From: Guillardia theta CCMP2712
Taxonomy: Eukaryota > Protista > Cryptophyta
Reading direction: 5' to 3'
NCBI RefSeq assembly: GCF_000315625.1
Contig: NW_005434644.1
Span: forward strand, 378,973 to 442,972
Length of the DNA: 64,000 bases
Part shown: positions 17,061 to 30,939 of the stretch, one piece after another
Position numbering within the stretch: the first letter of the stretch is position 1
Layout: the number at the start of each line of letters is the position of its first letter
Made by a program: the position numbers and the translations under genes
Notes under the pieces: generated by a model
The model's database searches: none
Seen by the model: the letters and a program-made list of their open reading frames with translations, nothing else
What the model was told of the DNA's origin: nothing

Positions 17061-17149
17061 GGATGCGGCCCGTCACGTCAAGGGTATCTCCGATGATCAT
17101 CGACCACAGGATGCGAAGGACCCTTACAAAGAGGGACGTATCGCTCACT

Positions 17150-17400
17150 GGGGCTCCCCCTGCCCTGCCCTGCCCTGCCCTGCCCTGCCCTCCGACTCAG
17201 GGGCTCCCCCTGCCCTGCCCGGCCCTGCCCTGCCCTGCCCTGCCCTGCCCTGCCCTCAGGGGCTCTTCCTTCCCACCCCTCCTCTCCCCTGCCCTCAGGG
17301 GCTCCGGGAGTCCCACTCCCCTCCCCTCAGGGGCTCCCCTGCCGCAGTGCCCTGCCCTGCCCTGCCCTGCCCTCAGGGGCTTCCCTTCACACCCCTCCCT
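17150..17400. repeat. (GCCCT)n / CTCAGGGGCTC minisatellite
   Basis: Tandem TGCCC pentamers interspersed with CTCAGGGGCTC units. Confidence 0.85.
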
Positions 17401-18507
17401 CCCCCCCCCCCTCCTTCTTGAACAAGTAGTTCTCCGACTCAGAACGTTCTATCGTCTTCGCAACCCCCTTCCCTCGGGACTTTTCTCCCCCGTCTCTCAC
17501 CTCGTATGTTCCTTTCTCCCTCTAGCCTCTTCACGTGATGAATTCTCCGTCTATCCTTTCTTCGTTTCTCCACGTGAAAGCGCAGAAACACATCGCTGTC
17601 CTTCCCATGCGACCCCCGCCTTCTCTTCATTTCGCTCTCAAGCACCCTTCCTAAACGCTCCTTGCAGGCGCCTTTCATAGACGGCTCATTATCAGCACGG
17701 TGAGCACGATCTGCCTCCATTATAAAGAGGCGGATCGCTCATTGCGGGTCTGACGGACCAGCGGTGTCTCCTCTTCGTAGTTGGACCATCACTGTACAGA
17801 GTGGTAACATGGCGAGAGGGTTGTCAAGCTCCCCCTTCGAATGGCTGAGGATACGGCTTGATGGAGAGCAGGCAAAGCAGAAGCAACGGCGCAGAGGAGA
17901 GTCGCTCGGTCGGGCATGTGTTTGGTCACGCTGATGGGAATCAAGAACGAGCTGGCTATAGAGGTTGAATCAGAGATATGTGGTTCAGATAGAAAGATCC
18001 TTGACAGGACAGGCTCTGCTCGTCTATCAGGATGACATCGAAGATTATTTGGCTACCTTGCAGTGATTGGCAATTGCGATGCCGTTGTTATACGACGCAG
18101 AAGACGGTGAAAGTAGAATAAAACTCGAGTGTGATGTCAGGCAGGAAGATAATTGATCATGATAGAACGTTGGAGATGAGTGAATCAACCATCAAATCTC
18201 CGATTCTAATTTGAAGCGTCACCGAATCGCGCGAGCACACCGAGCTCCTGGTCAAAGGAGCGAGGAAGTTCTTCACTTGATCGAGGACACGACCGAGGAC
18301 ACGCATGTTGACAGACTTTTGCGCCCTTGCAATGTTGCCATGTAGTCGCTGCTGCCACTGCATATGAGTGCAGCATCACGTCGCTCTCCCTACCAATCTT
18401 GCATCAACTCTCATCACTCGTCTCTCCCCAGCTTTCCCCATCTGCTCTGTGAGTTGTCTGGTTTTACTTTTTTTTATTACACTCCACCTCCTCTATACAC
18501 ACTTCCG

Positions 18508-19251
18508 TCATCGTTTCTCCTGCATGTGACGTATTTCCACTGCTGCTCCTTCCATAACGCTCCACACCTCCGTCCTGTCTCCCTGCTTCCCTCCCGGCCT
18601 CGTCCTCCCTCGTCCTCGCTGCCCTGGCCTTCCCTTCGCCCCCGCCTTCTTCTTCTCCGCAAAGCGCACCATCACCCGATGCGCGTTCTCTGGTCGTAGC
18701 AGCTTGCTGATCGCCGCCCGGCTCTTCCCGTACGTCTCTGCGATGGTCATCTGCTTCATGGGGCTCTCCTCCTGTCCGGCCCTGTAGTAGAGCTGGATGA
18801 TCTCGGCCTTCTCCTGGAGCGTGAGGCGCTTCTTGCCGATGCATGCTTGCCGGTGCGCCGTGCGCTCGACGTCGCCCCACGCTCGCTTGGTGTTCTTGGG
18901 GTCATCGGGAGAGGAGCAAGCAGGCCCTGGACAGAGCCGCTGGTCAGCGTCTTGAAGGGAGGGCTCCTCCGTGTTTGAGGGTTGGGAAGGAGGGTCTTGC
19001 TTGCTGAGGAGGCAGAGGAGGCAGAGGTCCTCGTAAATCTCAGGCTTTGTCGTGCTGGAGGACGTGTCCTCGTGCCAAATTGCGTCTCCACACTCCAGGC
19101 AGGTGGGGGAGGAGAGGGGCTCGTGGAGGAGGTCGAAAATGTCAGGAGGGGAGCGAGGAGGAGGTTCCGTTTGTGATGAGATGTTGAGAGAGGAGGAGGG
19201 CTGGAGGAGAGCGAGGAAGTCAGGGGCAGGATCATCATGCATGGAAGCCAT
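18508..19251 (-). CDS. HTH-core family copy 1: C2C2 Zn-finger-like head plus CENP-B/psq-type HTH
   Basis: Intronless. CLECG...DLCLLC followed by KRLTLQEKAEII...QMTIAETYGKSRAAISKLLR. First ATG at 19251. Confidence 0.8.
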   Translation of the reverse strand: MASMHDDPAPDFLALLQPSSSLNISSQTEPPPRSPPDIFDLLHEPLSSPTCLECGDAIWHEDTSSSTTKPEIYEDLCLLCLLSKQDPPSQPSNTEEPSLQDADQRLCPGPACSSPDDPKNTKRAWGDVERTAHRQACIGKKRLTLQEKAEIIQLYYRAGQEESPMKQMTIAETYGKSRAAISKLLRPENAHRVMVRFAEKKKAGAKGRPGQRGRGRTRPGGKQGDRTEVWSVMEGAAVEIRHMQEKR

Positions 19252-19528
19252 GGATGTCAAAGCGACTGAAGAGGCTACGTACCCTTCGTTCAATCGCTTT
19301 TTTCTAGGGACCCCACCCCCCTCTTTCCATACCCTGACATGATTTTATATTGCCATATTTTATGTGCAGCTGCCTCAGCAGTCACTGTTAGGAGGATGAC
19401 CACCGGTGCTACGGACACAAAGGGGTCTGTGCACCGGTACTTTCTCCTGATATCCGGACGGGTCCTGTTGGTTGACGCGTCCTTGAGCGATACCAACAAT
19501 GATGCGGCCCATTTGGATCGGAACAATA

Positions 19529-19711
19529 GATAGTTCTTGAGTACCCCCTTGAGCATAGCCCCCACCCCCGCGGCTGAAGGCGTGAGTACCCCTGAAACTA
19601 GCCTGACGTGATTTTTTAATATGAGTTATTGATAGGTCTTGAGTACCCCCTTGAGCATAGCCCCCACCCCCCGGCTGCAGGCTTGAGTACCCCTGGAACT
19701 ACCCTGCCGTG
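19529..19711 (+). repeat. ~80-bp direct repeat (19529-19610 and 19631-19711) containing four TGAGTACCCC motifs
   Basis: Both units read GATAG.TCTTGAGTACCCCCTTGAGCATAGCCCCCACCCC...TGAGTACCCCTG.AACTA.CCTG.CGTG. Located between divergent copies 1 and 2. Confidence 0.9.
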
Positions 19712-19799
19712 TTTCGACACTCTCAATAATACAACTTTTAAGAGCGAAATCAAGTCTCTTAGGAAAGACCTCCAAAAGAAACATGATCGAATCATTGAT

Positions 19800-20306
19800 A
19801 TGAGGCAGCGTATTAATGACCTGCATGATGATCTCGACGATGTGAACAGAAGAATCGATGACGCACTCGCAAGACTCAACGAGCGTGATTCTTCCTTTGA
19901 CTACACTAAAGGCTTCTTCTACCTCACCCTTGGCCTCGATGCAACGAAGAGTTGTACACCAAGCGAGGTCACCAAGTATGAGTCCAGAAAACAACAAAAC
20001 GCCGACAAGCGACTCCCAAGGCCTGCTTGCTCCTCTCCCGACGACCCCAAGAACACCAAGCGAGCGTGGGGCGACGTCGAGCGCACGGCGCACCGGCAAG
20101 CATGCATCGGCAAGAAGCGCCTCACGCTCCAGGAGAAGGCCGAGATCATCCAGCTCTACTACAGGGCCGGACAGGAGGAGAGCCCCATGAAGCAGATGAC
20201 CATCGCGGAGACGTACGGGAAGAGCCGGGCGGCGATCAGCAAGCTGCTACGACCAGAGAACGCGCATCGGGTGATGGTGCGCTTTGCGGAGAAGAAGGTG
20301 ATGTAA
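19800..20306 (+). CDS. HTH-core family copy 2: coiled-coil head (no Zn finger), HTH and truncated tail
   Basis: ORF 19629-20306 with first ATG at 19800. Heptad-like RINDLHDDLDDVNRRIDDAL. Identical 85-aa core at 20043-20297. Confidence 0.75.
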   Translation: MRQRINDLHDDLDDVNRRIDDALARLNERDSSFDYTKGFFYLTLGLDATKSCTPSEVTKYESRKQQNADKRLPRPACSSPDDPKNTKRAWGDVERTAHRQACIGKKRLTLQEKAEIIQLYYRAGQEESPMKQMTIAETYGKSRAAISKLLRPENAHRVMVRFAEKKVM

Positions 20307-20709
20307 CAGAAAGCGAGCCTGAGGCGACGTTGAGCGAATGGCGCAGGTCTAGGGCTAGGCGGCGGCAGGAAGACAGATAGTTATTCTGCGAGAGGAGGCT
20401 TGAAGGAAGCCGCAAGGAGAGGAGGGCAAACAGATTGCAAACTTAATCAGAACGTGAGATGGAAAGGACAAGGAGCTGAGCTGCCTGACAGAGACAGAGA
20501 ACATTGGAGTGCAGTGTGAACAAGGGAACAAAGAGTGTAGAAGTGCTGAAAGATTCGTTACATTTTGCTCTGCAATGTGGGATAACAGATCCATCATCAT
20601 CTTGTTCACCTGATCGCTTCCTGAAGCACCGGCCCCGAGCTGTCGGACCTTGACACCTATTGAAAGTTTGAAATAGGACCGGTGTCTTGACCAGCTCGGC
20701 AATTTGCCT

Positions 20710-21670
20710 GGACCGGTGGTCATCCTCCTACAGATGCCCGTCCATGCATGCACAAAAAAAACACTTCGGCCTCCGTGCTGACTTTTTTTTCTCCTCCTAT
20801 CCAGGTTTTGCCGTCATCCGGGGGAGCAAGGAGCCCCGTGGGGCTGGAAAGAGGACGAGGACCTCGAAAGAGGACGAGGACCTCGAAAGAGGACGAGGAC
20901 CTCGAAAGAGGACGAGGACCTCGAAAGAGGACGAGGGAGATTCCATATCTCGCAGGCCTTGGCCTCTTCTTCTCCAGGCACAGCACAAGACGTACCGCGC
21001 CATCCCCTCCTCTTCCTTGCTCAAGCTTCAAAGGGCACTCGTCTTCACCTGTGAGTCGCGGCGATGAGCTTCATCCGCACTGAAGCTGCCGCCCGCTGGT
21101 CGTCGCTGAGTGATGCGTGAGGCTCTTGATCTGCCTCATGTCAGCATGAGCAATGAAACCACGCTACGTCGCGTCGCCAAGCCGCGACATGACATTGACC
21201 ACCACTGCTTTCTGCTGCAAGATGATACGTCCTGGTGGTCGGGATGAAGGCAGGCTCTCTCTCATGTGAGAGAGGCTGCTCGGGCGCCTCGGGGGGGGGG
21301 GCGGCTGGAGAGCTTGTGTGCTGCTGCCGGAGAGCTTGTCGTCGTACGGATGCGCTTTCGGTCTCTGCCATGCAGCTCTGACTCTCACAGGGAGCGCAGC
21401 GAAGCCCGTGTCTGGTGTGCGATGCTGCAGGCCTTGTACAGCACTCGGACGAGATCAGAGAGCCGCTTGAGACTTGAAGAGGGTGACATCTTGCAAAGCA
21501 CACCTTGATGGCTGTACACAAGAGCCATGTGCTGGTCCAGCTGGAATCTGACAGATAGGCTCGCTGGTTGCCCGGAGCGACTTTATCTAGGGCTCGAGAC
21601 GCACGACGAGAGCAGCATGCTTCTCGCCTCATCGCCAACGGTAATGGGTGAATGATGACCCTGATCTCCA
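20710..21670 (+). repeat. ~0.95-kb duplicated segment, copy A (copy B at 26931-27830), probably a decayed gene
   Basis: Near-identical from GACCGGTGGTCATCCTCCTA to GAATGATGACCCTGATCT. Copy A has the 19-bp unit GAAAGAGGACGAGGACCTC expanded about four times. Confidence 0.9.
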
Positions 21671-22035
21671 TCTTTCTTAATTTGATTTTTCAATGATGAC
21701 CCTGATCTTGTTGTGTGTGTTCTTGTGTCTGTTTGCATCGGGCCTCTGTTTTCTGGACTCACACCTTGCTACAAAAAATTCTGAACTTGCAGCCACGACT
21801 TACTTGTTGCTCACTTCAATGACGGTCAGCAATACTTGAAAACTACTTATAAGTATATAGAGCTATTGTAAACCAATGGTTGCCTCTGAGTCGCCTGTTG
21901 CTGCTGTCAAGATTTTTCCTTTCGCCCTCAGTTCAAAGCATACTCGATCCTCAATAACCATTCCATCCCACTTCCACGTAAGCTCATGCTTGGTGGGTTT
22001 TCAGGTTTACTTCTTCTTATTACACTCCACCTCCT

Positions 22036-22776
22036 CTATACACACTTCCGTCCTAAACCCTCCATAACGTTCTGCATCGTCTCTCCTCCATGCGTCGTCT
22101 TCCAGGCAGCCTGTTCCATCTGATCTCCTTGCTTCCCTTCCAGCCTCGCCCTCCCTCGTCCTCGCTGCCCTGGCCTTCCCTTCGCCCCCGCCTTCTTCTT
22201 CTCCGCAAAGCGCACCATCACCCGATGCGCGTTCTCTGGTCGTAGCAGCTTGCTGATCGCCGCCCGGCTCTTCCCGTACGTCTCTGCGATGGTCATCTGC
22301 TTCATGGGGCTCTCCTCCTGTCCAGCCCTATAGTAGAGCTGGATGATCTCGGCCTTCTCCTGGAGCGTGAGGCGCTTCTTGCCGATGCATGCTTGCCGGT
22401 GCGCCGTGCGCTCGACGTCGCCCCACGCTCGCTTGGTGTTCTTGGGGTCATCGGGAGAGGAGCAAGCAGGCCCTGGACAGAGCCGCTGGTCAGCGTCTTG
22501 AAGGGAGGGCTCCTCCGTGTTTGAGGGCTGGGAAGGAGGGTCTTGCTTGCTGAGGAGGCAGAGGAGGCAGAGGTCCTCGCTGGACTCAGCACGGTCCTCG
22601 TGCCATATGGCCCCTCCACACTCCAGGCAGGCGGGGGAGGAGAGGGGCTCATGGAGGAAGTCATTGTGCAGAGGAGGGGGATGAAAGGGGTCATCTTGAC
22701 ATGGAGGGAGGCAGGAGGAGGGGTCGAGGAGAGCGAGGAAGTCAGGGGCGGAGGCGTGGAAGGGAGCGAGCAGCAT
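22036..22776 (-). CDS. HTH-core family copy 3
   Basis: Intronless 246-aa ORF with CLECGG...DLCLLC and the identical core. Confidence 0.85.
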   Translation of the reverse strand: MLLAPFHASAPDFLALLDPSSCLPPCQDDPFHPPPLHNDFLHEPLSSPACLECGGAIWHEDRAESSEDLCLLCLLSKQDPPSQPSNTEEPSLQDADQRLCPGPACSSPDDPKNTKRAWGDVERTAHRQACIGKKRLTLQEKAEIIQLYYRAGQEESPMKQMTIAETYGKSRAAISKLLRPENAHRVMVRFAEKKKAGAKGRPGQRGRGRARLEGKQGDQMEQAAWKTTHGGETMQNVMEGLGRKCV

Positions 22777-23939
22777 GGGGTTGAGAGCTGAGGTATCGAG
22801 CTAGCAGGTGTCCACCGCAGAGGTCAAAAAACCAAATAAAAATCTTTAGATCTTCCGCTGCTTCTAGATTTTACTCAACTCCTCACAAGGACAGTTGTTA
22901 CTCTTACAAGTGTTTTAGGCGTGCTCTACATCGTTTTAGCCGCCCGCATCCGTCCCGGTACGTGGAGAAAAAAAAACTAAAAAACATCTACACGAGACTA
23001 TCTTTTTTTTATTTGGCGAACCACCACGTTGTCATGGCCGCTGCTGTTGCACTTTTAATTTCTAATAGTTGGAGTCGGCCCTATTATTGTTATAAGAGAC
23101 TAGATTGCAATCATTATTAATTAACTTACCACAGGAAGTCAATTATTAATATAAGTCAATCCCAATCCGTACCCTGTTATGCTGCCGTTGATTCAGACTG
23201 ACGGAACAAAGATCAAGGCTTTAATGTAGAGTAGGACTGCGACAGGCAAGGTGGGCGTTCACTGACGAGCACAAAGAAATTCGCGAAACAGCCGCTCTGT
23301 GAAGTGAGTTGCGGATAGGACGAGGGAGGCGGAGCTCGTTTCAAGTTTAACTTGCAGGGTGAAAAGGAGATTGTGTTGTAGTCATCAGAGCGAAGGAGAC
23401 ACGAATCGTTCGAATCAAATTTTTCAGTCATATTCACACACACATCATCCAAGTCAATTGCAAGCAGAGGCTCTCCTCGCTCCTGTCTCTGAACTTTTCA
23501 CGTTACCCATGCCAGTGTGACCAGGCGCAGTCGCTCGAGGTTGATGAGAGCTCTCAGGTCGTCTGGACAGAAGTAAATGGATCCAAGGAATTGGGACCAG
23601 CCACAGGGGAGACTCGCGACGGCGGCGTCAAAGTTCGGGACTGGAAACATACAACTCTTCTTTGCATCTATCTAGAAGGATATATTGATGGGAGAGCAGA
23701 CGTCCAAAACGAGCAAGGCTCCCGTCATAATTCATTTAGAGCCAACTTCCAGCATCTTTCTTCGGCATCTCTCTTCCTGAGTCTGCATCTCCTGTGACAG
23801 GCAAAATTGCACAATAAGAACCTGCTTACTTACAACGCGATCCTGATAGCGACGTAGACAGCATCTCGGTCGCCCTGACCAGAGCTGTGGCCTATTCACA
23901 CCTTGAGTCCTACATTTTCTCCAGACACATCCCCCCTGC

Positions 23940-24210
23940 CGCTCTTGGCTCCTGATCGCTCCGCCTGCTAGTACTTGATTTCCGTCAGCGACTCTCCTCA
24001 CTCGGCGTCGTCTTCAGCGATATGAGCTGGGTCAAGCTTGACCCCCTCCCAACGTTTGCCAGGCAGAGTGATGGTACAATTGCCAACAGGAGGACAGAGG
24101 AGGACAGACCTCTCACCTCTCTACTAGAGCACAGGAGCCGTCTATGAAAGACGAAGACTGCAAGGAGCGACGGGGTGCAGAAAGGTGTGAAGGGAGGGAC
24201 GAGAGTCAAA
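23940..24210 (+). repeat. Direct repeat, copy A (copy B at 26140-26640), flanking HTH copy 4
   Basis: The 107-bp block 24016-24122 is identical to 26268-26374, with shorter collinear blocks on each side. Confidence 0.9.
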
Positions 24211-24905
24211 AGGGAGAAATTGAGTGCAACAGCACCAGCTCCTCGTCGACCAGAGCGAGGAGCAGGATGAGGAGGGATGCCTGGCTGGCTGGGCGTGCGA
24301 GGTGGAGAGATTGTGGGGGAGGAGCAGGAGCCGTCTATGCAGATCGATGGCAGGAATCGGAGCGTACGGGAGGGGTATTTGAGAGCAGGAAGGTATGAAG
24401 CGAGTGCAAGAGAGATTGCAAGCAAGGACAATGAAGGCGTGTGATGGTGAGGGAGGAGGAGTGATCGAGCAAGCAGCAGGAGCGTGGAGGATGGGTGAAG
24501 GCGGCAGAAGATGTGAGGGATGAGACGGGAGTGACGTTCGGAGGCGAAGGGGGGTGGGGGGGGGGAAGAGGTCGACATCAGTGATACCTCTACTCGGGTG
24601 GATCCACTTACGAGGTCCTCACGTCCTCTTTTCGCTGTTTCGCTGTCCATTATTATAAAGATCTCCCTTACAATCTCCCGGACCTACATCTTTACTCCCT
24701 CCCGGGTCATAGGGGGCTAGGGCTAGCTAGACTAAAACTATAATACGGAGGTTATATTGGGTAATGACAAAAACAAAAAAAACCCGGAACTAAAACCACT
24801 TTTTAAAACGACTTCCGAGACTTGACCCGCCGATCAATCATAGGAGGACGACCACCGGTCCAACATAAGTATCCTTCTCCAGCACCGGTGCTATCCTCCT
24901 CCTCC

Positions 24906-25688
24906 ATGGCGCTTCCGCATGATCATGACCCGCCTCCTGATGCTTTTCCTGAATGTTTCCTCCGCGCCCCCTCCATCCCCCAGGACGACTCCAGCTCTCA
25001 TCGCCAGCCGACTCCTGCTCTCGCCGCTGACCATGCACAGTCGAAGCGACCGGAGCCTCACCTCGAATCATTCTCTTCCCACGCGTGCAGAGACTGCGGA
25101 GGAGCAGTATTGATCGACCAAAAGGATAAAACTGAGACGGACATCTGCCTCCTCTGCCTCCTCAGCAAGATCGATGCATCACCAGAAGAACAGCTAAAAA
25201 CAGAACAGAACGACACTGAGCTCTTCTTAGACACCTCATCCCGCCCACATGAAAACCAGGACCCCAAGAATACCAAGCGAGCATGGGGCGACGTCGAGCG
25301 CACGGCGCACCGGCAAGCATGCATCGGCAAGAAGCGCCTCACGCTCCAGGAGAAGGCCGAGATCATCCAGCTCTACTACAGGGCCGGACAGGAGGAGAGC
25401 CCCATGAAGCAGATGACCATTGCGGAGACGTACGGGAAGAGCCGGGCGGCGATCAGCAAGCTGCTACGACCAGAGAACGCGCATCGGGTGATGGTGCGCT
25501 TTGCGGAGAAGAAGAAGGCGGGGGCGAAGGGAAGGCCAGGGCAGCGAGGACGAGGGAGGGCGAGGCCGGAAGGGAAGCAGGGAGACGGGAAGGAGGAGGT
25601 GGGAGCCTCATCATCGCAAGGAAAGTCGAAGGCGATGGGGGAAGCGGGCCTTGGGGAGGCTGGGAGCTTGTATCAAGGAGGATGGTAG
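24906..25688 (+). CDS. HTH-core family copy 4 (divergent Zn-finger-like head)
   Basis: CRDCGG...DICLLC plus the identical core. First ATG at 24906. Confidence 0.85.
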   Translation: MALPHDHDPPPDAFPECFLRAPSIPQDDSSSHRQPTPALAADHAQSKRPEPHLESFSSHACRDCGGAVLIDQKDKTETDICLLCLLSKIDASPEEQLKTEQNDTELFLDTSSRPHENQDPKNTKRAWGDVERTAHRQACIGKKRLTLQEKAEIIQLYYRAGQEESPMKQMTIAETYGKSRAAISKLLRPENAHRVMVRFAEKKKAGAKGRPGQRGRGRARPEGKQGDGKEEVGASSSQGKSKAMGEAGLGEAGSLYQGGW

Positions 25689-26139
25689 GGACTGGTAGAA
25701 GTTGATTGACGAAGCCTAGTAAACCTGATGACTCACAGAGCAGGGCTGCAAGGCAGTTGGAACAAAAGGGAGAAAAACAACAAGATCACAGTTTAGGAGC
25801 GAGCCATGGCTTTATCAGTAGAATCTTCCACAGTGCTTACTGTCGTCCTTGTCTTCTTCCTCATTCATGACGTGATCATGTTTTCGTTTCATTTTGACCA
25901 AGAGCTGCCAGATGGAGATTTCATCGCATACCCGTCGGATAGCAATCAGGCCTCGTCGCCACCAGGTAGCTCAACCGTCGATGTCTCTCCTGATACAGTC
26001 AAAGACAGCATCTCCCATCTTGTTTGCCCTGACCAGAGCTGACAGCAACCGCTTCTTGTCGTGTCCAGCTTCCTCCTCCACAAACACACCCGATACCCCA
26101 TCCTCACCTCTCTCCCGCATCTCTCCTGCGTGGTCAAGC

Positions 26140-26640
26140 TGCTTTTGGCTTCTGATCCACATGACAAATCCGCCTGCTAGTACTTGATTCCCCTCAGCCT
26201 GATCGCATACCCGCCAAGCAACGTTTCTCTCAGCCATCTCCTCTGCTCCCCGTCCAGCCGTATCCTTAGCGATATGAGCTGGGTCAAGCTTGACCCCCTC
26301 CCAACGTTTGCCAGGCAGAGTGATGGTACAATTGCCAACAGGAGGACAGAGGAGGACAGACCTCTCACCTCTCTCCTCCTCGTCTCTCCTGCTGGTCCGT
26401 CCTACCCGCACTGAGCGATCCGCCCCTTGCAGCATCAGCTCCTCCTCCTTCAGAGTACGATGAAAAGGGAGCAGCATTGAAAAGCATGGCGAGGAACATC
26501 TTGCTCCAGCCAGGAACGAGGAGAGATATGGGAGGGGGGAGAGCACAGGAGCCGTCTATGAAAGACGACGATGCAAGTGGCGTCTTCGAGGGGTGTTTGA
26601 GAGTAGGAAGGTGTGAAGGGCGGGACGAGAGTCAACAGGG
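26140..26640 (+). repeat. Direct repeat, copy B of 23940-24210
   Basis: Same blocks as copy A, with longer intervening segments. Confidence 0.9.
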
Positions 26641-26930
26641 AGGAGCCGAGCGATTCCAATGGTGTGTGATGGCAAGGGAGGGAGAGGAGGATTGAGTGAG
26701 AAAGACAGGTTTGTCATCATGACGCTTACCTCTGTAACCATCTGCCACACAGACAATGATTGAAATAAAGCAATGGACGACCCAGCATTTCATTCCAACT
26801 CCAGTTCGGCAACCTGCTTGACACACAACATCTTTCACAAACACTCCATTATCCTTGATATAACTTCATACTCCTTCTCCCCTCCAGCCACCTTCACTCC
26901 ACCTCCTTCGGCAATCTGAAGGCAGGGCCT

Positions 26931-27830
26931 GACCGGTGGTCATCCTCCTATGGATGTCGATTAAGTCAAACTTTGGCCTCCGTGCTGACTTTTTTTTTCT
27001 CCTCCTATCGAGGTTTTGCCGTCATCGGGGGGAGCAAGGAGCCCGTGGGCGCCCTGGAAAGAGGACGAGGACCTCGAAAGAGGACGAGGGAGATTTCGTA
27101 TCTCGCAGGCCTTGGCCTCTTCTTCTCCAGGCACAGCACAAGACGTACCGCGCCCTCCCCTCCTCTTCCTTGCTCAAGCTTCAAAGGGCACTCGTCTTCA
27201 CCTGTGAGTCGCGGCGATGAGCTTCATCCGCACTGAAGCTGCCGCCCGCTGGTCGTCGCTGAGTGATGCGTGAGGCTCTTGATCTGCCTCATGTCAGCAT
27301 GAGCAATGAAACCACGTTACTTCGCATCGCCAAGCCGCGACACGACATTGACCACCATTGCTTTCTGCTGCAAGATGATACGTCCTGGTGGTCGGGATGA
27401 AGGCAGGCTCTCTCTCATGTGAGAGAGGCTGCTCGGGCGCCTCGGGGGGGAGGGGGGGGCTGGAGAGCTTGTGTGCTGCTGCCGGAGAGCTTGTCGTCGT
27501 ACGGATGCGCTCTCGGTCCCTGCCATGCAGCTCTGACTCTCACGGGGAGCGCAGCGAAGCCCGTGTCTGGTGTGCGATGCTGCAAGCCTTGTACAACACT
27601 CGGACGAGATCAGAGAGCCGCTTGAGACTTGAAGAGGGTGACATCTTGCAAAGCACACCTTGATGGCTGTACACAAGAGCCATGTGCTGGTCCAGCTGGA
27701 ATCTGACAGATAGGCTCGCTGGTTGCCCGGAGCGACTTTATCTAGGGCTCGAGACGCACGACGAGAGCAGCATGCTTCTCGCCTCGTCGCCAACCTCGTG
27801 AGGAAACGGGTGAATGATGACCCTGATCTG
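26931..27830 (+). repeat. Duplicated segment, copy B of 20710-21670
   Basis: Collinear and near-identical to copy A. Confidence 0.9.
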
Positions 27831-28025
27831 CATCATGCGTTGAATGTTTTGCTTGCCGGATTATCTCATCTTGCTCTTGAGGATTCTGGCCTTTTCCTCA
27901 CTGCTGGAATTCTGTCGTTCTTATCTTCTCCCGTCTCCATGTCATCCTACTTCTAGACTGTGCTTTTCCCGATGCATTGTCACTCCGCTGTATTGGATTT
28001 CAGGTTTTACGGCTTTTTGTAAGAT

Positions 28026-28721
28026 CTACAAGCCTGTATACAAGCTCCCAGCGCTCGCCTCCTTCGTCCCGTCTCCCTGCTTCCCTTCCGGCCTCGCCCT
28101 CCCTCGTCCTCGCGGCCCTGGCCTTCCCTTCGCCCCTGCCTTCTTCTTCTCCGCAAAGCGCACCATCACCCGATGCGCGTTCTCTGGTCGTAGCAGCTTG
28201 CTGATCGCCGCCCGGCTCTTCCCGTACGTCTCCGCGATGGTCATCTGCTTCATGGGGCTCTCCTCCTGTCCGGCCCTGTAGTAGAGCTGGATGATCTCGG
28301 CCTTCTCCTGGAGCGTGAGGCGCTTCTTGCCGATGCATGCTTGCCGGTGCGCCGTGCGCTCGACGTCACCCCACGCTCGCTTGGTGTTCTTGGGGTCATC
28401 GGGAGAGGAGCAAGCAGGACCTGGGAGTCGCTGGTCGGCTTCTTGAAGGGAGGGCTCCTCCGTGTTTGAGGGCTGGGAAGGAGGGTCTTGCTTGCTGAGG
28501 AGGCAGAGGAGGCAGAGGTCCTCGCTGGACTCAGCACGGTCCTCGTGCCATATGGCCCCTCCACACTCCAGGCAGGCGGGGGAGGAGAGGGGCTCATTGA
28601 GGAAGCTGTTGTGTAGAGGAGGGGGATGAAAGGGGTCATCTTGACATGGAGGGAGGCAGGAGGAGGGGTCGAGGAGAGCGAGGAAGTCAGGGGCGGAGGC
28701 GTGGAAGGGAGCGAGCAGCAT
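28026..28721 (-). CDS. HTH-core family copy 5
   Basis: Head nearly identical to copy 3 (MLLAPFHASAPDF). Identical core. ATG at 28721. Confidence 0.85.
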   Translation of the reverse strand: MLLAPFHASAPDFLALLDPSSCLPPCQDDPFHPPPLHNSFLNEPLSSPACLECGGAIWHEDRAESSEDLCLLCLLSKQDPPSQPSNTEEPSLQEADQRLPGPACSSPDDPKNTKRAWGDVERTAHRQACIGKKRLTLQEKAEIIQLYYRAGQEESPMKQMTIAETYGKSRAAISKLLRPENAHRVMVRFAEKKKAGAKGRPGPRGRGRARPEGKQGDGTKEASAGSLYTGL

Positions 28722-29134
28722 TGGAGCTGAGGTGTCGAGCCGCAGGCGAGCTGAGGTCAAATCTTTCTTTTAAAAAAAACAGCGAGAGCATCCATCTTGT
28801 ATTTTTGTGTTTTAGCCGATTGTTTGTACGTAGAGGCACGAACCGTTGCGATCTCGAGTCTTCTGAGTAGTAAAGCCGTACAGGCCGCGACCCTTGGAAT
28901 CATATTGCACACGGCAACTACCGTCTAAACTGTGTAGTACAGAGTTTGTAGCCGCGAAATACTAAAAGTTTTAAGTTTATTAGTTTATAGGAGTGTAGCC
29001 GCGTACGTAACCGCGAAAACACGGAACGACATTTCGAACCGTTGAAATATTATTGAAATATTATACTTTTAAATCAATTTAAAATATAGTATAACGTATC
29101 GATTACTTTTCATTGCTTCATGTAGCCGCGTCAT

Positions 29135-29750
29135 GAGCGGCTAGAGTCGGCCCTGAGTCGCAGTGCTCAATCTCTCAGATGCCATGATGCCGGGCTGCCA
29201 GGCTGCCGGGTACGTTCGGAACTTGAACTTCACTGAGAGGCTCGGCGAGCACTGCGGCTCGGCGACTCAGTACTGTGACGCAATCGGCAGCGGCGGGTCA
29301 AGCCTCCTCTACTGACTCTCCTGATTGTCTTCCGGCGTACCGTACTGCCAGGGCCACTATTTTTAACTTCAAGTAACTTTTGACGGTAAACAATGCAACT
29401 TGAGTCAGTGAGCGCCATCACCGTACGGTTCACTTTCCGAGAAGTTCCTCATGCGCCGATGAGTAACTCGCACTGAGCGATCGGACCGTCACTGGGATCC
29501 GGCGGGCAGCGCGGCCGGCCGCTGACCCGGAGGCGGCGTCGGACACCCGAGCCGGCAGCCACGCGGCCCAACGGGGCGGCCACCGCGGTGCGGCACCGCG
29601 GCACTGTGAGGGTGACCGTACTCAGGCCCACAGCCCAGGCCGCGCCGGTCGGAGCCCAAGTTCTCCGGGCGGTGAGCCTCAGCCGGCGGAGCGGAGTCAG
29701 TCGTCGGACCGCACGAGACTCCGACGGTCACCAGTGAGCGGCACTTGAAT
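29135..29750. other. GC-rich palindromic-word island
   Basis: Same vocabulary as the other islands. Bounds the HTH block on the right. Confidence 0.7.
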
Positions 29751-30231
29751 GGGAAAGAGAAACAGCCACGGGGAAATCATTCGGAGGAGCCTGAAGTCTG
29801 AGCCAGTTCGGAAAGGGAGGGATGAAGGGAGGAAGGGAACTTGGAACGACTCGGAGAGGGATTCAACTTCAGACTAAATCAGAGGGATTGGGCGACGGAC
29901 GGGATGAGAGGAAAGAGAGAGAGACTGTGGTCACGGTACACCGGACCCAAGTGTTCTAGTAAGCGCAGTAGTGATTGCTCTGGTGATCTCTCTCATTCCT
30001 GAAGGTTGTGTGTACGGTACAACCTCTGGTAGCAAGTTGGTTCAGTTTCAATGGCCTCGAAAAGAATTTATGGAAACAAATCGACATGTCCGGCAAGAAA
30101 GGATTTCCGCCCGCAGGAAATCGTGACGGTCGCGCTCAAACTCGGTAGAGAAGTTGTGTGTACAACAGAGACAGAGGCAGAGGAAGACAAAGAGAAAGAC
30201 ACGGGGACAGAGACAGAGAGGAAAAGAGAGA

Positions 30232-30236
30232 TAGAC

Positions 30237-30331
<95 letters not shown>
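30232..30331. repeat. (GACA)n microsatellite
   Basis: More than 20 tandem GACA units. Confidence 0.95.
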
Positions 30332-30333
<2 letters not shown>

Positions 30334-30939
30334 GCAAAGAAGAGAAAGTGGAGAGAGAGAGGATAGATCTAGGAGAGTTATGGAGGGGGGAGGTTGATCG
30401 AAAGCGGCAAGGAAGACAGAAGAGGAGGAGGTAGCCAAAAGCAGGAGAAAGAGGGAAAACGAGAGAAACAAAAGAGAAGAAAAATACAGAAAGGGCAGGG
30501 CTTGGAAGAAACGGCAAGACTTAGTAGTACTACAAGCACAGTATCAAACAAAAGTTGAGAGCAAGAAATCAAAAAAAAATTTATGAGAGAATGAAAGAAA
30601 GGATTGATAGGACCCAAAGATAAGAGCAGTCAAACTTCTCATCCAAGTGTACTGGAATATTCAAGCGATACCGATACCTGACGGCTATTCCATTGCCGTG
30701 AGAAAGCGTTTGACTACTGTTTCAATGCCTTGTCCCAAGAAACTCGTCTACTCCAAATCCCACAACAGTCAATGAAAGCATGAGAGTCAACCCTCTAACA
30801 CAACTTGCTGAAACTCTTCTCAGGCTTCTAGCCACTTCCTACTCCATCTGCCATCATCAACCTTCGCCCCCCAAACTAAAATACACTACTATCGCCCCCT
30901 ACTACCCGCCCTACCCTACCGCCCTAGAAACCCCCCTAG

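Follow-up and report, generated by a model that had tools for sequence, protein, structure and literature searches.

Concerted evolution by partial gene conversion is a well-known process; its textbook cases include the inverted hsp70 pairs of Drosophila, the palindromes of the Y chromosome and the globin genes. CENP-B, the Abp1/Cbh proteins of S. pombe and the TIGD genes were domesticated from a domain of the CENP-B/pogo type. A third described system, the R64 shufflon, has inverted repeats inside coding sequence and variable ends on a constant part. The present report concerns a locus that can be compared with all of these. It lies in the nuclear DNA of Guillardia theta CCMP2712 (contig C30:378973-442972 of the 87-Mb assembly; this stretch of 64,000 nucleotides is called the window below), where four full-length genes and one chimeric gene fragment carry a common predicted DNA-binding domain of the helix-turn-helix (HTH) type. 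The five copies are abbreviated c1-c5. An earlier description, made from the letters alone and called here the sequence-only reading, presented them as a shufflon-style array with an invariant core and shuffled heads and tails. The observation is confirmed by our analysis, and its interpretation is partly supported. We believe, with a probability of about 0.8, that the locus is a locally duplicated cluster of a cryptophyte gene family, the HTH cores of which have been homogenised by gene conversion under purifying selection.

The open reading frames (ORFs) of the five copies follow each other in the order -,+,-,+,- (n = 5), all of them where the sequence-only reading had placed them. In the ORF listing c1 occupies 18508-19293 (minus strand), c2 19629-20306 (plus), c3 22036-22776 (minus), c4 24822-25688 (plus) and c5 28026-28760 (minus). 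With eukaryotic ATG starts, the full-length genes are c1 at 18508-19251 (247 amino acids), c3 at 22036-22776 (246), c4 at 24906-25688 (260) and c5 at 28026-28721 (231), and the chimeric c2 encodes 168 amino acids from 19800 to 20306. The lengths of c1, c2, c4 and c5 match those of the stored proteins P0002, P0004, P0003 and P0001; c1 is further delimited by alignments, and c3, which was the query of this comparison, by site patterns and self-BLAST. The copies had been called intronless; the word describes continuous frames with lengths equal to those of the stored proteins. The 5' edge of the common block in c4 (...CAG/G) and its 3' edge in c2 (AAG/GTGATG) resemble exon edges, and a separate core exon was therefore considered; since nothing interrupts the frames of c1, c3, c4 and c5, the likeness is treated as a probable coincidence. 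Each of the full-length genes comes with a start, a stop and flanks of its own; c1, c3 and c5 are in direct orientation, and c4 is inverted relative to them.

The 85-amino-acid core (DPKNT...FAEKK) is found at 18649-18903 in c1, 20043-20297 in c2, 22195-22449 in c3, 25260-25514 in c4 and 28143-28397 in c5, and is invariant in protein across c1-c5, as had been reported. Its 255 nt of DNA are 96-100% identical among the five copies, and the variable sites (n = 7) are all synonymous third positions. The size of ~255 bp given earlier is correct for the core, but the identical block varies from 255 to 347 nt by pair. Outside it the copies form a mosaic, which was also recognised correctly. The heads of c3 and c5 are 95.8% identical over 685 nt, that of c1 is ~85% identical to them, and the most diverged one, that of c4, aligns as protein only and keeps the CxxC...CxxC motif; this corresponds to the diverged C2C2 heads previously attributed to c1 and c4. 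A tail and 3' untranslated region (UTR) are common to c1 and c3 (18463-18509 and 22006-22052, 96%), including the 36-mer quoted in the sequence-only reading, and another tail type, confirmed by alignment, is common to c4 and c5, the latter being ~60 nt shorter there.

The gene c1 consists of a predicted-disordered head with CxxC...CxxC, the HTH core and a basic GRP/RGR tail; c3 has the head and a downstream intergenic element (X) like those of c5 together with the pre-core, tail and 3' UTR of the c1 kind; and c5 combines a head like that of c3, its recent duplicate, with a tail like that of c4 and a pre-core like that of c2, with which it has a 3-nt deletion in common. In c4 the homogenised block (25260-25606) comprises the core and the proximal basic tail and has a sharp 5' edge at ~25258; c2 and c4 have only the core in common. 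Chance can be excluded, because repeats of 255-347 nt at 96-99% identity adjoin flanks that fail to align.

According to the Nei-Gojobori estimates, synonymous divergence (dS) in the core is 0.02-0.11 and nonsynonymous divergence (dN) is 0 in all ten pairs, and dS of the heads reaches 0.31 for c1-c3 and ~1.6-1.7 for c4 versus the others. In the pair c3-c5 the head dS of 0.067 is close to the core dS of 0.074, which is what a simple duplication of recent date should give. The ends of the tracts depend on the pair: the block identical between c4 and c1, c3 or c5 covers 337, 340 or 347 nt, that of c2 covers 297-306 nt, and that of c1-c3 extends over ~450 nt at ~99.5%. In three-sequence site patterns c3 goes with c5 in the head (65 vs 9) and in X (94 vs 9), and with c1 in the pre-core (5 vs 1) and in the tail plus 3' UTR (26 vs 4). 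Head sites and tail sites thus group the copies differently, and these patterns switch along c1, c3 and c5; discordance between trees of head, core and tail had been named in the sequence-only reading as support for shuffling. A metagenome orthologue with the same head type has a core that is only 78% identical in protein, compared with 100% among the five copies; the core therefore changes between species and yet is uniform within the locus. Considering the dS contrast, the variable tract ends, the discordant site patterns and the divergence of the orthologue, the best explanation appears to be recurrent non-reciprocal conversion with variable endpoints, acting between direct and inverted copies. 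The mechanism itself we infer from these patterns; the earlier suggestion that the cores may act as conversion points is in line with them.

One could dispense with conversion by assuming that the copies are very recent duplicates in which the disordered heads and tails diverged extremely fast and selection froze the core. Heads and tails are indeed predicted to be disordered, their dN/dS is ~0.4-1 and they contain many indels. However, the synonymous sites of the core are frozen as well (core dS 0.02-0.11 vs head dS 0.3-1.7); the boundaries of identity are sharp and pair-specific, and the copies group in one way by their head sites and in another by their tail sites. We consider this explanation unlikely.

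One relation within the locus does look like simple duplication. The element X (0.9 kb) is present twice on the plus strand, between the 3' ends of c2 and c3 (20763..21672) and between those of c4 and c5 (26970..27834); in a self-comparison the two are 96% identical and in direct orientation. X and the c5 head mark a tandem duplication of ~2 kb with a period of ~6 kb, and we read c3 and c5, X included, as a plain recent duplicate. A duplicated convergent pair, (c2, c3)/(c4, c5), was rejected: only X and c3/c5 are duplicated. Inside X there is a 19-nt tandem repeat, with ~5 units at 20818-20936 and ~2 units at 27028-27089; similar repeats are found on contigs C335 and C93.

The pattern is not confined to this locus. 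The family was compared in nine other sampled stretches (on seven further contigs), where the cores of most pairs within a stretch are 98-100% identical, often next to 240-nt flanks at 47-66%. The exceptions are some pairs on C221, with cores only 83-90% identical, and some pairs in which the whole unit is duplicated and the flanks are identical too. A tree of the cores places the copies of each sampled stretch (9 of the 9 others) with those of their own contig, on short tips. Mean GC content at third codon positions (GC3) is 0.91 in the cores and 0.70 in the rest of the coding sequence, heads and tails; all 28 genes out of 28 show the difference, and it is consistent with GC-biased conversion. 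With the known cases of partial conversion the locus has in common the low dS of the tract relative to the flanks, the variable ends, the grouping by locus and the raised GC3 of the converted part. It differs from the textbook examples in that the converted tract is one small DNA-binding domain and in that the situation recurs on nine other stretches beside heads and tails that do not align.

A genome search with a hidden Markov model (HMM) gave ~111 matches, which are spread over more than 40 contigs and mostly form local arrays; 108 of the 111 are in open frames that contain no internal stop. By a hand count from the match coordinates, 38 pairs of neighbours point the same way and 23 point in opposite directions, and contig C167 has an alternating array too (69-90 kb); strict alternation is thus not a general rule, nor is it peculiar to the locus. 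All-direct arrays exist, such as the six copies on contig C23. Clusters differ by ~30-40% in core DNA; the one nearest to the present locus is on contig C74. When 1.84 billion representative proteins were searched exhaustively with the HMM, only 241 reached E <= 0.001. The relatives sampled belong to G. theta, Hanusia phi and Rhodomonas salina or stem from MMETSP transcripts and environmental assemblies; so far as found, the family would be restricted to cryptophyte algae. The paralogues on other contigs bear GUITHDRAFT names. A word-based protein search gave the four stored proteins (c1, c2, c4, c5) and one metagenome relative and nothing else, a protein atlas search gave no usable match, and for c3 and c4 no encoding contig was found among records leaving out the window's own genome. 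A literature search found no paper on this Guillardia family. The family is new to the searchable literature, and the locus is typical of its clusters; gene conversion in arrays is an ordinary mechanism.

The sequence-only reading had assigned the core to the CENP-B/pogo psq-type HTH, and several comparisons point the same way. In the Pfam scan for CENP-B_N (PF04218) the window copies obtain 11.4 bits (E 0.26), which is below the gathering score of 21.2, and only c3 and c5 are listed among them; the paralogues score 18-20.5 bits. A family profile built from 21 paralogues and searched against solved structures has CENP-B as its top match (E 0.08). The AlphaFold2 model of the core, with a predicted local distance difference test (pLDDT) score of 84.5, superposes on CENP-B(1-129) bound to DNA (1hlv_A) with Z 7.8 and a root-mean-square deviation of 1.8 A over 57 residues; the next structural entry is two Z units lower (5.8), and the list of matches also includes Brinker, Tc3 and the Drosophila distal antenna domain. 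Foldseek against the PDB returned only insignificant generic HTH matches, and CENP-B was singled out via re-alignment. By hhalign the family profile A2 matches the N-terminus of the G. theta DDE_1 protein L040 (probability 84%, E 8e-6), and by BLASTP the paralogue L014 matches the DDE_1 protein L041 (E 4e-9) over a span that includes both HTHs. As the profile, structure, paralogue and DDE_1 N-terminus comparisons agree, we take the core to be a three-helix HTH of the pogo/CENP-B type without a transposase domain.

The origin from a transposase-type HTH, as proposed before, is likewise supported by the alignment with the N-termini of pogo-type DDE_1 proteins and by the paralogues that add HTH_Tnp_Tc5. 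This second HTH is above the Pfam threshold in the distant paralogues L014, L016 and L013. Neither HTH_Tnp_Tc5 nor DDE_1 was detected by the Pfam scan in the five window copies, and the statement that no DDE domain follows the core holds for them. Pogo-type DDE_1 open frames are present at two loci only in the genome, L040:1003-2694 (contig C16) and L041:859-2625 (C3), both uninterrupted, of 563 and 588 amino acids. A C-terminal PB1 domain is joined to the HTH in L014:1295-2584 (C2), L019:1349-2338 (C70) and L020:1187-2035 (C43); L014 thus has it in addition to the second HTH, which L016 has as well.

Compared with the N-termini of CENP-B, pogo and Tigger, the family has the same predicted three-helix HTH, superposing on repeat 1 of CENP-B, and is homologous to the N-termini of the pogo-type DDE_1 proteins of G. 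theta itself; some domesticated pogo derivatives likewise have no DDE domain. It differs in that the window copies keep the first HTH only and add an N-terminal W-x7-H-x3-C helix and the CxxC...CxxC head motif, and in that its ~110 short members occur in local arrays and only in cryptophyte records and environmental assemblies. The W-x7-H-x3-C helix, invariant in the 21-paralogue profile, precedes the HTH; this helix, the short CxxC...CxxC motif of many heads and the basic GRP/RGR tail, which falls within the homogenised block, are new relative to the CENP-B/pogo domain. The full-length model of c3 is confident only for residues ~118-198, with pLDDT ~50 in head and tail. The profile and structure searches proposed by the sequence-only reading therefore led to CENP-B for the core but to no confident fold for the C2C2 head (pLDDT ~50), and a zinc-binding module there is a candidate only.

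We presume the following course of events. The family (~110 members) would encode small DNA-binding proteins, probably nuclear, each with one folded domain, the three-helix HTH after the W/H/C helix, between a predicted-disordered head and a basic tail. The cluster would have grown by local duplication, most recently by that of c3/c5, each with its X element. A stretch of 255-450 nt with the HTH at its centre would subsequently have been copied repeatedly and non-reciprocally between direct and inverted neighbours; purifying selection would purge amino-acid changes in the core, and heads, tails and promoters would drift or be swapped piecemeal. (In the upstream 600 nt of c1, c3, c4 and c5 no 10-mer is common to at least three.) Because conversion and purifying selection would keep the core protein uniform, all five copies may read the same DNA target. 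DNA binding by the core we infer from its sequence and model, and a role of the proteins as transcription regulators is suggested by sequence.

Several considerations weigh against this explanation. The high GC3 of the core could instead reflect a stronger codon bias in a conserved domain. Five copies do not suffice to tell which way each conversion event went, and the assembly of the repeats and the arrangement of the copies are taken from the assembled sequence alone. The window copies score below the Pfam threshold for CENP-B_N, as given above, and DNA binding and function are predicted only.

The second copy requires separate discussion. The sequence-only reading had ascribed to it an unrelated coiled-coil head. 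The head is indeed unrelated to the others, but it is a 93% copy of part of another gene. The foreign 5' part of c2 (19526..19976, plus strand) was delimited by an own-genome DNA search, the ORF on contig C201, BLASTP and DNA alignment. It begins with ~100-nt tandem repeats (19526-19714) and continues with 262 nt (19715-19976) that are 93% identical to C201:16642-16909, an internal part of a coiled-coil/J-like gene; the start codon of this donor gene is absent from c2, and BLASTP gives 88% over 90 amino acids. The family-derived part, assigned by alignments, follows at 19977..20306 (plus) with the pre-core and the core; it comprises ~320 nt and is closest to c5 (98.3%). Homology stops sharply at 20297, and the stop codon comes three codons past the core, so that the earlier description of c2 as truncated was accurate. 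We interpret c2 as a fusion of ~320 nt of a family gene with a piece of an unrelated gene for a coiled-coil protein, and not as an alternative effector head or a designed variant; conversion would keep its core intact. The donor gene (L037:3539-4279 = C201:16538-17278) encodes 246 amino acids, a coiled coil with a weak DnaJ-like segment. In front of it, at C201:15291-16407, tandem repeats of ~100 nt form an array, and c2 too has two units of this repeat before it; the repeat and the gene fragment would therefore have moved together.

A fusion of two unrelated loci is what the capture of fragments by a transposon would produce, and it is tempting to regard the copies as mobile elements, their "genes" being cargo or decaying remnants of a transposase. 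The HTH is of the transposase type, and c4 is bracketed by direct repeats of 111 nt. On the other hand, the window copies have no DDE domain and the repeat search found no inverted repeats besides the cores; in the own-genome DNA search the heads and flanks of c1, c3, c4 and c5 had no counterpart outside this locus; the difference in core DNA between clusters indicates that there was no recent transposition; and the predominance of open frames over the genome, together with purifying selection on the core, does not suit decaying remnants. Such an origin of the present pattern is quite improbable in our opinion.

The 111-nt repeats were located by self-BLAST and a palindrome search at 24012..24122, left of c4, and 26265..26374, right of it (both plus strand), and are 99% identical. 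A perfect palindrome of 16 nt, GGGTCAAGCTTGACCC (at 24029 in the left copy), lies within each of them and is found at these two places only in the whole 87-Mb genome. A duplication scar, an insertion boundary and a control site are all possible interpretations. A looser continuation of the repeat (~81%) can be seen at 24126-24216 and 26540-26642.

The comparison with a shufflon implies programmed or frequent reversible inversion between inverted cores, which would swap tails in convergent and heads in divergent pairs. The inverted repeats required are available (282-347 nt, 96-99% identical, 1.1-7.8 kb apart), the tail of c5 is like that of the inverted c4 and its pre-core like that of the inverted c2, and evolutionary inversion at such repeats is physically plausible. 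Nevertheless, we could not uphold the comparison. The ORFs scanned, those of the five copies and nine more in the window, yielded neither a dedicated site-specific recombinase nor any recombinase domain, although spliced genes could escape such a scan. Short fixed crossover sites were not found either: the repeats are coding tracts of 255-347 nt, and the ends of exchange vary by pair. The genes are complete, each with its own start and stop, which leaves no common constant region; the two X elements are oriented alike; direct copies and all-direct arrays, including the six copies on C23, are homogenised equally well; and the word-based protein search gave no recombinant forms of heads and tails. 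The locus is thus similar to R64 in having inverted repeats inside coding sequence and variable ends on a constant part, and differs from it in that its repeats are long coding tracts with variable ends, that a dedicated recombinase is missing among the ORFs scanned, and that it has neither short crossover sites nor one constant region that is expressed; we saw no sign of inversion. We consider programmed inversion very unlikely. A related version, in which the inverted cores are substrates of recurrent mitotic inversions, so that a culture is a mixture of isomers with heads, tails and promoters newly combined with one DNA-binding specificity, and the locus a recombinase-independent eukaryotic analogue of a shufflon, seems to us just as improbable. 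Rare evolutionary inversions between inverted cores, able to have moved tails, are possible.

That the identical cores are collapsed or mis-joined repeats is hardly credible: the copies carry different private synonymous variants, no runs of N interrupt 16-31 kb of the window, unique sequence flanks each core, and many further contigs repeat the pattern.

As to the surroundings, a low-complexity tract of TGCCC-type repeats lies left of the cluster (17063-17680), and another one, of CAGA/GTCT-type repeats, lies right of it (30050-30520) and gives rise to long spurious ORFs. Upstream of c5, at 29018-29158, ~140 nt match sequence of contigs C40 and C180 at 93-94% identity and are probably a short dispersed repeat. 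The Rfam scan of the window gave no match. A bacterial promoter/terminator scan was set aside as inapplicable to a eukaryote.

The genome of G. theta is the reference for cryptophytes, and very little is known about nuclear gene regulation in this alga. The ~110 genes of the family are annotated as hypothetical only and fall below the Pfam thresholds; they are thus probably missed by domain-based catalogues of transcription factors. The family would provide a clean natural case in which concerted evolution is limited to a single, transposase-derived domain: each cluster would keep its own version of this domain uniform, with the remainder of the protein free to diversify. If the proteins are regulators, each cluster would represent a set of factors with a common target site and different effector regions.

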